Part shown: positions 1 to 33,430 of the stretch, in pieces | How the letters are laid out: every line of letters begins with the position of its first letter | Position numbering within the stretch: position 1 is the first letter of the stretch | Source of the DNA: Orbicella franksi | Taxonomy: Eukaryota | DNA: 64,000 bases | Direction: 5' to 3' | Assembly: GCA_964199315.1 (NCBI GenBank) | Contig: OZ116708.1 | Span: 3,968,001-4,032,000 of the forward strand | The notes under the pieces: generated by a model | Told to the model about the DNA's origin: nothing | What the model saw: only the letters and a program-made list of their open reading frames with translations | Database searches by the model: none | Made by a program: the position numbers and the translations under genes

Positions 1-50
1 ACAGCAATGCCTTGTTCTGTGTAAGCAGAGATGTCACTTGGTCGATCCAT
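1..50 (-). CDS. 5' end of a BH3-only-like microprotein gene (copy A), truncated by the window edge
   Basis: ATG at 50 (-) gives MDRPSDISAYTEQGIA, matching MNHPSDLSARTERGFT of the 3012 ORF. Acceptor TTTACAG at 102-108 and the UTR (ACCATAAGGG...AATAATTTGAGCAAATC-ATG) match the + copy. A non-coding first exon ends at a GTAAG donor at 461/462; TATAAAAG lies at 575-582. The BH3 motif itself is outside the window. Confidence 0.75.
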   Translation of the reverse strand, partial: MDRPSDISAYTEQGIA

Positions 51-559
51 GATTTGCTCAAATTATTGCCAGTGACAATTTGCCCTTATGGTAAGTAGTT
101 CCTGTAAACACGAATCGTAAAATCATTTCATGTTTAAATATTGGTCTTAATGTTGGGAGTAAATTAATATCACAGAAATGTGACTTCAGCCCTTAAGGCA
201 TGCTTAACCCGTTAGTTTGTATCATTACGTTGTCCCATTGCAATATTGCTGTTGGTGCGATTCGTCCAATGTACTTAGCGACCTCACTAATGAAAGCAAA
301 ACGTGCTAGGAACGAGGAACGAAAAAATGGGATTCAATTGTGCTTGCAAAACAAAAACAACAAATATGTTTGCTCAAAATTCCGTAGAAAACGTTGAAAA
401 ATCGATGGCACATGAAAAACCAAAATATTCTAGAAACATTGACCTCTGGAAACAAACTTACCCAGAGTTCTGTATCCTTCTCACTTCTCAGCTTGACTTT
501 TTGCTGAAGTTCGACTCTCTTGTTCCACACGGGAGCTGGTAAGAGCTAATATGAACTAA

Positions 560-720
560 CCATGGCATGAAGCCCTTTTATAGGCCGAACCATCGTCCAA
601 AAATCACGAATCACGAAACAAATAACACGAAATATCACGTAACTCCATACCGTGTTTGTAAATCTTAACAACAATACCTCAGAGAGAGCCGGAGGGCACA
701 ACATCACGAGAACGGATTTC
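560..720 (-). promoter_or_regulatory. Promoter module of copy A (TATA box plus clustered CACGA motifs)
   Basis: Aligns in reverse complement with 2430-2590, e.g. TACAAACACG...CGTGATATTT..TGTTATTTGTTTCGTG.TTCGTGATTTTTGGA...ATAAAAGGG. Confidence 0.65.
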
Positions 721-989
721 AATAAAAACAAGCTCACATTATTTCACCAAGACTGAATTGTTTTAACTTCATGATTTTTCTATGTTTAAATCTTGCTTAA
801 GGCATATGTTATAGTAAACATAAGGGTTTATTTGCGATATCGTGTTGTGTACCGTGGTCTTGAAATCACATGAGGAGGATCACGTTCACTTATTCTCAAA
901 AACAAGTGAGTTAAATACTAGTTATTACTCACGATATATTATTTATGTAAATGTGTATGAGAAATGTTATGATTATCAATCTGAGGACT

Positions 990-1770
990 ACTGAAATTAC
1001 TCTGAGTAAATGTATTAGCCCAGTTCATGTCATGACAAACTTCAAGAGGTGACACTTCCTCAGTTAATGTGAATTGTTTTTATGAAGTGTCCTTCAACTT
1101 GAGAATATTTCCGGTACATCTGTTTTTCAATTTATTTTTCATCATTGACTTACGATAATTTTATTCCCGACAAATTACGTTGGCAAGAGGTGTTGTAAAA
1201 TATATGAAGCGTGTTTTACTTGAAATATATATCTGGCTAAATATCTAAGTAGATAAAGTCAGAGGAATTTAAGCTTACTAAAAAAGCAATTTTCCTAGCA
1301 TGGTAATGCATACAGAAAACGTGAAGGTTCCTCAAGAGATGTAAATCGCCTTTCTTAATCTTTATGCCATACAATTCAATTTGTTTCATATAGCAAGAAA
1401 TATCTACAGCCACAGTATGTAATTACAGTAGATGGTCGCGCCTATGGTGCGAAGTTTCGCTCTCAGGTCAACTACTCTGGCTTGACTGTTGCTGACATAT
1501 TTTAATCCAGCTCTGTGTAGTACGTAAGTCCACAATTTAGATCTCAGGAGAAAACACGAAACACAAAGAAAATCACAGAATCAAAACATCGTCATTATCA
1601 TTTCCCATGTTCACAATAGTAGACTAGTAACAATAACTCACGAGAGGGCACTGTACTGAGAAACGTCACGAGATAAAAATTGGATAAACTTAGGCTAAAT
1701 AAACATATTGAACAAAATTTTCCACTCTAATGTTCACATATGACGCTCATGTTTAAGATACTACAAACAT
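990..1770 (-). pseudogene. Probable decayed third copy of the BH3-only gene (promoter, first exon and coding relics)
   Basis: 1625-1680 matches the promoter module (AACAATA.CTCACGA.AG.GC...TCACGAGA.AAAATT). 1475-1498 matches the copy A first exon (GCTTGACT.TTGCTGA). 1084-1122 reads MYRKYSQVEGHF, a possible eroded BH3, with stops and frameshifts. Confidence 0.45.
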
Positions 1771-31219: not shown

Positions 31220-31559
31220 ATTGAGTGATCGTAGTTAGAAAAGTGAAAGTGTTCGCACGCAAATTCCTTGTTTCGGCCCTGCAGTTTGTTTTTCTTCTTT
31301 AAACAAGGATACAATTTAAGGAAATGGTATCTTTGTCCTAAAAAGAGAAAAAGACATTAAAACCAAGCACCGTTGTCGGTGGCGTACTTCCTTGCTGACG
31401 CATCAACGTAACCGCACTAGTAGTGAGCTTAGTGAAAACACAACCGAGTGCTCCCGTTAAAAGAAAAAATATATATACTCACAGAAGTTAACCAATGTTC
31501 AAAACACTTGGCATAGTACTTGAAATAGCAATTTAAAAAGCAAAAGCAAAGGAGAAGTA

Positions 31560-32560
31560 GAGAGTAGAAGCAAGCCTTGGCGCGGAAGCACTAAAATAAC
31601 TACCACCATCAAACGAGCCTTGCAGTGGCGAAGAAATGTCGCTAAAGAAAAATTTCTTTGGCACGCCGCTCTCTTACGTGATTGGTCAGCTTGACAAGTT
31701 AGTGCTTTCTGATTGGTTCCGGTTGATGACCTGTCAACACACTTCTTTCCGTTGAATTTCATCAAGAGATGAGGTCACTGAGATATATGGAACAGAAAAT
31801 TAAACATTGACGGGAAAATTTTATTTGTTCCACTCAAGATATCTGTCAGTTATTACAAAAGTAGCATTCTGCCTCCCAAAAAGACTCATTGGAACAAAGT
31901 CTGACCCGAAAATCGTACGAATTTTCAACTACGGTTTGCAGAGATCTTGCGAAACGAAAGTAGAACAAAAAGTACATATGTAAGCGAAAAGTAAACATAC
32001 ACAATGTTTTCGCCGAATCTTTCTCGACGCCTACCATGAATAATTTTGTTTGCTCTTAGCTCTATGTCACCCGTAAGGCTAAAGAATCACCAAGCATTAA
32101 AAGAAACGCTTTGAAATGTATAATAAAGATTGTAAAATCGAGAAATTTAGGTTGAATTGTCAAGATCATCAATATGTTGGAAAATTATGCAAATTAACCT
32201 CAAAGTGCATTTTCATGAATTATTAATGTTAAAACATGGTCGAAAACCAAAAGAAAGCGTGGTTTTGGTGTGCTCTTGTTTTGAAACTAAAACCGTAAGC
32301 TTGTGCACGTGGACAACGGAATACACATCAAAAGAACAACTTTGATTGGTCAAGAAACAATGGCAATAACACGCGCGCGAACTATTGTCCTTGAGACAAT
32401 AGCAGGACTGACAACGTCTTAGACGCGAGCCAATCAAAAAATACAAAAATATTGCAACGTATTATTTGGCAGAATATCAAAAATAGGTGAATATATTTAT
32501 ACGCAGTTAAATATTTTTTTCGCGGGAACTTTTTTTTGGCGACGTTCAGTGAGTGAAGAG
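31560..32560. promoter_or_regulatory. Divergent promoter region between the Bcl-xL-like gene and BH3-only gene C
   Basis: ATTGG/CCAAT boxes at 31681, 31712, 32345 and 32430; E2F-like TTGGCGCGGAA (31577-31587) and TTTCGCGGGAA (32518-32528). Confidence 0.55.
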
Positions 32561-33175
32561 GCAAAAGACATTCGTTGCGAGAAGACCGACTGCCGAACAT
32601 TCGGTCTTGCCATGAATTTTGCCCTTCCTTGAGGAAGGTTAACAGTACTTGAAGTAATTACCAGCGAAGGAGAACTTTCTGCGACCGTCTTTCCTTGTCA
32701 AACAAGTTAGCTTCGAAGGCGAAACTTCAAGCAACAAGTTGTTGACTATTAAAGAAGCGAGCCGCTTGAAGATCATTTTATTTCGCCCTGGTAAGTGGCA
32801 TATTGAAAGCTTTCCACGAACAGGGCGTTAAATTACGTAGCTAACTGTCTTCCACAGCTTATCCAAGATGCTTTTATGGGCCATCTGCTTTCAAAGTTTT
32901 TATTTTGAAAGCTCGGATAGGAAATGGGTTCGCGAGCGGCTCTTTCTTTGCCGAGAATATAAATATATAAACAAGGGTAGTTGTTGTGCTTCACAGGGGT
33001 GTGAGACATAAAAGAAGCCGATAATTTCAATTTGCTTTTCTAAATGGTCATAACAGAGCAAAGTATGACTAATGGGCTGTCCTCTTTAGCAAAATAACTT
33101 CGAGTTTAACCTGTCCTCAACTCATGCCCATCTGTTTATTATATAGACCGCTTGGAGAGGATATACGTAACTGGT

Positions 33176-33430
33176 ATGGACCGCGACAAGCCAAGATCAG
33201 CCGGCAGCAAGCCACAAATAAATCAACTGGCTTGTCCTTCATGTGAATTGAGTCAAGAAAGTAAAGAATTATGCCGAGAAATTGGGAAGGTGTTGGCCAG
33301 AATTGGAGATAGAATAAACGCTTTGCAACTGACAAGGAATGGACACAATCTTCACATCAACTGTCGCGATGGCGAAAGGATAAACGATGATGATACGAGA
33401 CCCAGGACGGGGGTGAATAAACTTCCGTAA
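33176..33430 (+). CDS. BH3-only-like protein (gene C), 84 aa
   Basis: ATG at 33176 follows an acceptor at 33146; non-coding exon 1 ends CCTG|GTAAGT at 32790/32791. Residues 36-50 IGKVLARIGDRINAL are a canonical, BAK-like BH3. No BH1/BH2 or transmembrane segment follows. Confidence 0.8.
   Translation: MDRDKPRSAGSKPQINQLACPSCELSQESKELCREIGKVLARIGDRINALQLTRNGHNLHINCRDGERINDDDTRPRTGVNKLP

Follow-up and report, generated by a model that had tools for sequence, protein, structure and literature searches.

A pro-survival-type Bcl-2 gene and three probable BH3-only microgenes of two unrelated families at one locus of the coral Orbicella franksi

BH3-only proteins start mitochondrial apoptosis. Outside the bilaterians their genes have been nearly impossible to list, since only a short motif is conserved. 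In this study a stretch of 64,000 nucleotides of Orbicella franksi was analysed (G000:C11:3968001-4032000 within a 497-Mb coral-type genome; the whole stretch is called the window below). It carries a Bcl-2 gene together with three probable BH3-only microgenes from two unrelated families, and one of these microgenes, coding for 84 amino acids (aa), probably forms an old divergent pair with the Bcl-2 gene.

Among the described systems, the Hydra proteins HyBcl-2-4 and HyBH3-only-2 are alike in that a cnidarian pro-survival Bcl-2 protein is accompanied by a short BH3-only protein (Banjara et al. 2020, PMC7489894; PDB 6wgz and 6wh0; see also Lasi et al. 2010), and the two bind with a dissociation constant (KD) of 149 nM (Banjara et al. 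2020). The HyBH3-only-2 core, AIGACLRAIGDDI, resembles the core of the coral 84-aa protein, EIGKVLARIGDRI, in the pattern I-G-x-x-L-x-x-I-G-D-x-I (PMC7489894), whereas no homology between HyBH3-only-2 and the coral microproteins was detectable outside the BH3 segment. Binding was measured for the Hydra pair, while the coral pair is known from sequence and a structural model. No report of the Hydra BH3-only and Bcl-2 genes as neighbours was found in the literature searched; in contrast to the Hydra reports, the coral Bcl-2 and 84-aa genes are divergently arranged and kept together across genomes.

The vertebrate proteins Noxa (PMAIP1), BMF, BIM, BIK and PUMA are similarly short, with the BH3 helix as their only conserved element, and some vertebrate BH3-only proteins carry a hydrophobic C-terminal tail, as does the second coral family of 69 and 76 aa. 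No sequence homology above threshold was observed between the vertebrate and the coral proteins. Vertebrate BH3-only genes are regulated by p53, FOXO, E2F and IRF3, and to our knowledge they are unlinked to the genes of their Bcl-2 targets.

The BH3-only repertoire of corals was described as still to be characterised (Moya et al. 2016, PMC4715348). Candidate BH3-only proteins of Acropora and Nematostella, short, predicted to be disordered and encoded by intron-less coding regions, have since been presented (Suraweera et al. 2022, PMC8998228, Figure 5), without mention of gene adjacency; the two families described here may be among these candidates. Bacterial toxin-antitoxin pairs offer an analogy only: there too an antagonist and its target lie side by side and are co-inherited, but the coral pair is eukaryotic, divergent and made of separate transcripts, and is not a member of that class. 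Neither the core peptides nor head-to-head Bcl-2/BH3-only pairs were reported in the literature searched, the coverage of which was incomplete.

The Bcl-2 gene and the BH3-only microgenes

The following features of the window carry the argument:

30701-31219, minus strand: Bcl-2 coding exon 1 (173 aa) with BH4, BH3-like, BH1 and BH2 segments
28637-28753, minus strand: Bcl-2 coding exon 2 (38 aa), C-terminal membrane anchor with hydrophobic tail
33176-33430, plus strand: probable 84-aa BH3-only gene, core EIGKVLARIGDRI, head-to-head with Bcl-2
3012-3221, plus strand: coding sequence (CDS) of the probable 69-aa BH3-only open reading frame (ORF), core LALVGDQL
2968-3927, plus strand: predicted second exon and transcribed stretch of the 69-aa gene; the acceptor AG ends at 2967
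1-50, minus strand: N-terminal 17 codons of the 76-aa paralogue, core LAIIGDEL

The full 76-aa ORF lies at G000:C11:3967820-3968050 on the minus strand and extends 180 nt beyond the left edge of the window.

Analysis of the 211-aa Bcl-2 product revealed the Pfam Bcl-2 domain (PF00452, E=4e-30), with NWGR of BH1 at residues 121-124 and GGW of BH2 at residues 171-173. A GTGAGT donor stands directly 3' of the GGW codons. Exon 2 is preceded by a long polypyrimidine tract and a CAG acceptor, and in alignment it corresponds to the second exon of the 211-aa gene annotated in Oculina patagonica. Two coding exons split at GGW are given as the structure of pro-survival genes by Suraweera et al. (2022, PMC8998228), and the window gene shows both this split and the C-terminal anchor. 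The nearest solved relative of the protein is Hydra Bcl-2-like 4 (6wgz, E=2e-26), followed by Bcl-xL, and its own BH3-like segment is without the G-D. The exon structure and this kinship assign the gene to the pro-survival type, and a protective role is predicted for it from the kinship and the G-D-less segment. It is one of 13 Bcl-2-family genes found genome-wide.

The microproteins of 69, 76 and 84 aa, as well as a fourth one of 90 aa from a second locus described below, lack a Pfam Bcl-2 domain, and no Pfam family matched them above cut-off; a BID match over the BH3 region of the 76-aa protein (E=0.002) remained below it. In each of the three microgenes of this locus, strong conservation is confined to a canonical BH3 helix of the form hydrophobic-x3-L-x2-hydrophobic-G-D-x-hydrophobic.

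The 84-aa ORF, with its core read as LARIGDRI and an invariant C-terminus ending in GVNKLP, has 11 close homologues, one of them a hypothetical protein of Oculina patagonica, and a profile search added five more distant ones down to about 46% identity. All of these homologues, close and distant, keep L-A-x-[IFL]-G-D. The ratio of nonsynonymous to synonymous substitution rates (dN/dS) of the gene was 0.14-0.24, which indicates constraint at the protein level. The gene is single-copy in the genome, and 14 RNA runs from at least 10 studies contain 0.86-0.95 of the words sampled from positions 33000-33800 of the window.

For the 76-aa protein 40 full-length homologues were found, with 60-87% identity, and the 69-aa ORF is its inverted paralogue. 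The alignment of 20 sequences of this family (A1) has the invariant columns V..A..LA.IGD.L..Y; the invariant V, A, L, A, G, D, L and Y fall in V-A-N-K-L-A-I-I-G-D-E-L-S-L-S-Y, which is a complete Bak-like BH3. In both families the BH3 signature h1-x3-Leu-x2-h3-Gly/Ala-Asp-x-h4 is invariant (20/20 sequences in A1 and 11/11 in the 84-aa alignment A2), and it is kept in the distant relatives P0072, P0073 and P0075. The 76-aa gene had a dN/dS of 0.25-0.6; for its 69-aa paralogue the values ranged over 0.3-1.0, with one comparison near 1. A profile of the family recovered just two intact copies across the whole genome, both at this locus. The assembly ERZ26858540 (loci L003 and L004) carries three copies, of 69, 76 and 79 aa; the arrangement is near-identical on its two contigs, which may be haplotigs.

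In a polyA-RNA library (run X1), contigs with a depth of 6-16 were found over the 76-aa CDS, one lying inside it, over the 69-aa CDS and over the 3' part of the 69-aa gene. In the last gene positions 2968-3439 and 3519-3927 were covered at a depth of 10-16, and the putative intron had a depth of 2. In the same 5.9-kb stretch 18 of 30 bins were silent (depth 0), which argues against carry-over of DNA.

A bare BH3 motif is common: a loose expression matched 24 times in the six frames of the window, and about 1.25 matches of a strict one are expected per 100 kb. The three ORFs, all intact, are therefore distinguished by conservation, selection, expression and the complex model instead, and the 69-, 76- and 84-aa ORFs are genes and go beyond chance motifs. 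The strict motif also occurs in a 35-aa ORF at 32115 on the minus strand; this match, considered as a decayed copy, is at chance level and was rejected.

The nearest named clusters in a protein language model were, for all three microprotein types, vertebrate Noxa, BMF, BIM, BIK, PUMA, PXT1 and a BAK fragment, with scores of 0.76-0.86 that serve as leads only. Modelling of the complex between residues 1-173 of Bcl-2 and the 84-aa protein gave a score of 0.89, whereas none of three controls scored above 0.08; since many Bcl-2:BH3 complexes have been solved, this score shows likeness to them and not binding by this copy. Of 78 solved complexes, 51 attain the mark used for such models, as do 2 of 108 mismatched pairs; for eukaryotes the corresponding numbers were 39 of 65 solved pairs for which no similar older complex exists and 2 of 126 unrelated pairs. 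Contact agreement between the runs was at least 66%, and the predicted local distance difference test (pLDDT) of the partner was at least 54. In the model L40, G44 and D45 of the 84-aa protein contact G123 and R124 of NWGR.

These results have to be weighed against the possibility that the ORFs serve another interaction through an amphipathic helix, or are untranslated features of a conserved non-coding RNA, the BH3 motif being incidental. The missing Pfam family, the language-model scores below 0.9, the frequency of BH3-like motifs by chance and the single 69-aa comparison with a dN/dS near 1 would all fit such an explanation. It is nevertheless improbable: the invariant columns of both families are exactly the BH3 signature positions, the 84-aa gene is under the protein-level constraint noted above, the complex model seats the signature residues in the groove with an Asp-Arg pair, and every named look-alike of the language model belongs to a BH3-only family. 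It is thus very probable that the short ORFs represent true BH3-only genes, with the groove of the adjoining pro-survival-type Bcl-2 as their would-be target.

Each microprotein would place its BH3 helix in the groove of a pro-survival Bcl-2 protein, where the BH3 Asp would pair with the Arg of NWGR; occupation of the groove would release Bak/Bax-type effectors, and mitochondrial apoptosis would be permitted. The 84-aa gene and Bcl-2 would represent an old divergent pair, about 2 kb from start to start, that stayed intact while its flanks changed. The 69-aa and 76-aa genes are an inverted duplicate pair situated 27-31 kb from Bcl-2.

Much of this agrees with an earlier note on the same DNA, made from the letters alone. 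The two complete BH3-only-like ORFs listed there are the genes at 3012-3221 and 33176-33430 (both on the plus strand), its paralogue at the edge proved to be the 76-aa ORF crossing the window boundary, and the 211-aa pro-survival gene was recovered with its structure of 173 and 38 codons and its PF00452 domain; the proposal that the short ORFs are genes of BH3-only antagonists gained support from conservation, selection, the complex model and the look-alikes. The probable decayed copy of the same note did not hold up, since the genome-wide family profile yields the two intact copies only and the self-comparison of the window DNA showed an inverted duplication and nothing else of that kind.

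Head-to-head arrangement and promoters

The start codons of Bcl-2 and the 84-aa gene are 1957 bp apart, and the two genes are head-to-head. The same arrangement, with 1.7-1.96 kb between the genes, was found in five genomes, namely the window, Oculina patagonica (loci L005 and L007), L006, L015/L016 and L017; the pair is kept in every informative genome. In L015/L016 the microprotein is 46% and Bcl-2 83% identical to the window copies, and Bcl-2 of the L017 scaffold is 68% identical. The similarity of L015 and L017 to the window is limited to both genes and a part of the intergenic block.

The 8 kb upstream of each of the other 12 Bcl-2-family genes were scanned with the strict motif. One new candidate emerged, and the other match was the BH3 of a Bak/Bax-like gene itself. 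The candidate is a 90-aa ORF with the core VGQILQAMGDEL (V-G-Q-I-L-Q-A-M-G-D-E-L), which faces another Bcl-2 gene of the pro-survival type head-to-head at a distance of 1124 bp on another contig (G000:C1:26108733-26110650, at 26.11 Mb; loci L022:6734-7003, minus strand, and L043:1627-2139). The ORF shows 89-98% identity across nine coral metagenome contigs, adjoins Bcl-2 in all six contigs that have enough flank, and has a dN/dS of 0.19-0.56. Since the Bcl-2 paralogue is unrelated, this second pair indicates that the head-to-head design recurs.

The features recognised in the region between Bcl-2 and the 84-aa gene and in the promoters of the second family are:

31220-33175: conserved intergenic region between Bcl-2 and the 84-aa gene (alignment A3, four genomes)
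31238-31250: IRF-E-like element (resembling a site of interferon regulatory factors), GAAAAGTGAAAGT, 19 nt upstream of the Bcl-2 start codon, in 4/4 genomes
32187-32194: octamer, role suggested by consensus
32306-32311: E-box, role likewise suggested by consensus
32518-32528: E2F-like site TTTCGCGGGAA, in four genomes, within the putative 84-aa promoter
32612-32632: upstream ORF (uORF) of 6 codons, conserved in four genomes, within the putative 84-aa 5' untranslated region (5'UTR)
about 32790: GGTAAGT donor upstream of the 84-aa CDS
2417-2676, plus strand: promoter module of the 69-aa gene, with TATA box, putative non-coding exon 1 and GGTAAGT donor
2577-2586: TATA box of the 69-aa gene
about 2676, plus strand: GGTAAGT donor of the 69-aa gene, at which splicing is predicted
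550-742, minus strand: promoter module of the 76-aa gene, inverted duplicate of 2417-2610 with 75% identity

The region between Bcl-2 and the 84-aa gene contains four CCAAT boxes. The putative transcription starts of the two genes are about 1 kb apart, which suggests two adjacent core promoters and not one shared promoter. The E2F-like site and the uORF are a hint of cell-cycle or translational control of the 84-aa gene. The promoters of the two families are unlike and share no motifs: that of the 84-aa gene is of the CCAAT/E2F type, while those of the 69/76-aa family have CGTG-type repeats followed by a TATA box, kept in nine genes of four genomes (alignment A4), and a splice donor that is invariant in 9/9 aligned genes. 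The repeats read (T/A)CGTG or CGTGAT, and some fit bHLH-PAS cores resembling hypoxia or xenobiotic response elements (HRE/XRE-like). Since its TATA-type promoter differs, the 69/76-aa pair probably responds to other signals.

Two explanations of the Bcl-2/84-aa adjacency were considered. The microgenes may be true BH3-only antagonists whose position beside Bcl-2 is a neutral leftover of the slow change of gene order in anthozoans. Long collinear blocks are shared by the window and several coral contigs, the two putative starts about 1 kb apart have CCAAT boxes of their own and hence point to two core promoters, and the 69-aa and 76-aa genes are separated from Bcl-2 by 27-31 kb and three unrelated genes. 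Yet the pair persists in L015 and L017, where the surroundings have diverged beyond recognition, the same layout is met again at a Bcl-2 paralogue unrelated to this one, and the intergenic block is conserved as well. Neutral descent is therefore considered rather unlikely, although it is the more serious of the alternatives. That selection has maintained the adjacency of Bcl-2 and the 84-aa gene has, in our estimation, at best an even chance. The broader proposal that Bcl-2/BH3-only pairs are selected, co-regulated cassettes, and that gene order could serve as a general finder of BH3-only genes outside bilaterians, is put forward only tentatively, and we regard it as possible rather than probable.

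Several points weigh against the reading of the microgenes as BH3-only antagonists and of the 84-aa gene and Bcl-2 as an old pair. Local synteny is generally well preserved among these corals, so that common descent would lead one to expect the pairing in the closer genomes. The second pair was seen in close relatives only (dS no higher than 0.3). Constraint on the 69-aa gene is relaxed, with dN/dS reaching 1.0, and the RNA contigs carry information on neither strand nor splice form. The complex model may draw on solved Bcl-2:BH3 complexes that it has memorised, and it is silent on which of the 13 Bcl-2-family genes is the true target; translation of the ORFs as well as groove binding and killing activity of the microproteins are predicted.

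The ankyrin-cGLR and the other neighbouring genes

The remaining genes of the window are:

19229-22483, minus strand: single-exon ANK-Mab21 gene of 1084 aa, a cGAS-like receptor (cGLR) with about 16 ankyrin repeats, a Mab-21 nucleotidyltransferase (NTase) domain and Mab-21_C
11021-17994, minus strand: TMEM209, multi-exon (PF09786), with some exons located
11021-11548, minus strand: TMEM209 exon matches to PF09786
about 17796-17994, minus strand: first exon of TMEM209
6004-7314, minus strand: sulfotransferase ORF of 436 aa (Pfam Sulfotransfer_1, E=6e-16)

The cGLR family is strongly expanded in corals and includes fusions of the NTase core with ankyrin repeats (Li et al. 2023, bioRxiv 10.1101/2023.02.22.529553); these have the same Mab-21/cGAS-type NTase and ankyrin parts as the window gene, and adjacency to Bcl-2 is not mentioned there. 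The window cGLR matched PF03281 and PF20266 above their cut-offs, its nearest solved chains are the cGAS-like receptor 1 entries 8gjy and 8gjw, and 18 full-length orthologues were found. The G-S, E-F-D (E-x-D) and later Asp positions of catalysis align with those of the two solved receptors, and at the level of sequence the active site is intact, as the earlier note had it. At least 90 Mab-21 matches are present in the genome.

The same note had further proposed a co-regulated module of sensing and death, in which the ANK-cGLR, through STING, induces the linked BH3-only genes and these neutralise the adjoining Bcl-2. Apart from the intact active site, the gene order speaks in its favour: three coral genomes (the window, L008 and L020, the last with a cGLR of 73% identity) agree in the order and orientation of Bcl-2 and the cGLR, which lie about 8 kb apart, and the full 33-kb order from Bcl-2 to the 76-aa gene repeats on the 151-kb contig ctg71989 of ERZ25067879. 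Two of the 13 Bcl-2 loci lie near Mab-21 genes against about 0.1 expected, a rough and post hoc estimate that assumes about 55 independent Mab-21 loci and ignores effects of gene density. The IRF-E-like element is present in 4/4 genomes, although it lies in the transcribed 5'UTR of Bcl-2 and not at a BH3-only gene.

On the contrary, in Oculina patagonica the interval from Bcl-2 to TMEM209 contains a BTB gene and no ANK-Mab21, the order of the 84-aa gene, Bcl-2 and TMEM209 being kept. No Bcl-2 was found within 10 kb of a more distant ANK-cGLR paralogue (L021), nor within 9 kb upstream of the cGLR of L009; L006 and L015 were kept out of this tally, their flanks ending short of the expected cGLR position. 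Mab-21 matches number at least 90 genome-wide, and the fusion of ankyrin repeats with a cGLR had already been described in corals (bioRxiv 10.1101/2023.02.22.529553). A motif scan of the BH3-only promoters revealed no conserved consensus for NF-kB, the interferon-stimulated response element (ISRE), p53 (two half-sites), FOXO, AP-1, the heat-shock element (HSE) or the cAMP response element (CRE); the only related matches, a single p53 half-site and the IRF-E-like element, fall on the side of Bcl-2. The 84-aa and 69/76-aa promoter types have nothing in common. That IRF3 induces Noxa and PUMA was established in vertebrates, and we know of no demonstration of it in cnidarians.

With the cGLR missing from the Oculina interval and the promoters unlike each other and devoid of conserved NF-kB and ISRE sites, a co-regulated module is very improbable, and the cGLR looks like a bystander of the Bcl-2/BH3-only set. 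Of the conserved linkage that the note had asked for, the part concerning Bcl-2 and the 84-aa gene was found in all informative genomes, whereas that of the cGLR was limited to three genomes and gave way to the BTB gene in Oculina. A wider variant, in which divergent Bcl-2/BH3-only pairs are ancient selected cassettes duplicated as units and cGLRs were recruited beside some of them in some coral lineages (two of the 13 Bcl-2 loci here), coupling nucleic-acid sensing to mitochondrial death, is held to be just as remote. Under the preferred reading, in which the Bcl-2/84-aa pair and the 69/76-aa family make up the apoptosis set, the ANK-cGLR, TMEM209 and the sulfotransferase would be neighbours by descent and not parts of a circuit.

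Further observations were made on the cGLR genes. A frameshift, a stop or an assembly error divides the ANK-cGLR orthologue at L009:9349-12622 into two ORFs of 172 and 873 aa. In L021 (2510-3635) an intact paralogue is preceded upstream by decayed fragments of ANK and Mab-21. At G000:C6:1884389-1920066 (L012, L018, L013 and L019) three tandem multi-exon cGLR-like genes are situated 16-35 kb from a Bcl-2-family gene (C6:1.92 Mb).

TMEM209 and the sulfotransferase, both named in the earlier note, were confirmed by the PF09786 exons and the Sulfotransfer_1 match. The exons of the Oculina PF09786 gene align to positions 16881-17994 of the window. Synteny of the sulfotransferase is kept in L002 and L010; this gene is a neighbour and lies outside the apoptosis set. 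Downstream of Bcl-2 exon 2, a block of 1.5 kb (26720-28285) shows about 70% identity to Oculina and L020; no gene is annotated there in either, and the block may represent an extended 3'UTR or else conserved non-coding sequence. Positions 44897-45040 consist of 144 N, which mark an assembly gap or masked sequence.

Significance for cnidarian apoptosis

A link between cGLR immunity and this locus would be striking if true and is at present unsupported. What merits follow-up is that pro-survival Bcl-2 genes and BH3-only microgenes are paired head-to-head, in an arrangement both conserved and recurrent. The analysis adds three probable coral BH3-only families, two in the window and one on contig C1, which are backed by conservation and selection and, for the two families of the window, by transcription; for two of the three a likely partner Bcl-2 is indicated. 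It also provides a positional rule applicable to any cnidarian genome, namely to look on the opposite strand upstream of pro-survival Bcl-2 genes. Since apoptosis is implicated in coral bleaching and disease, the addition of these unannotated microgenes could change the reading of stress expression data.

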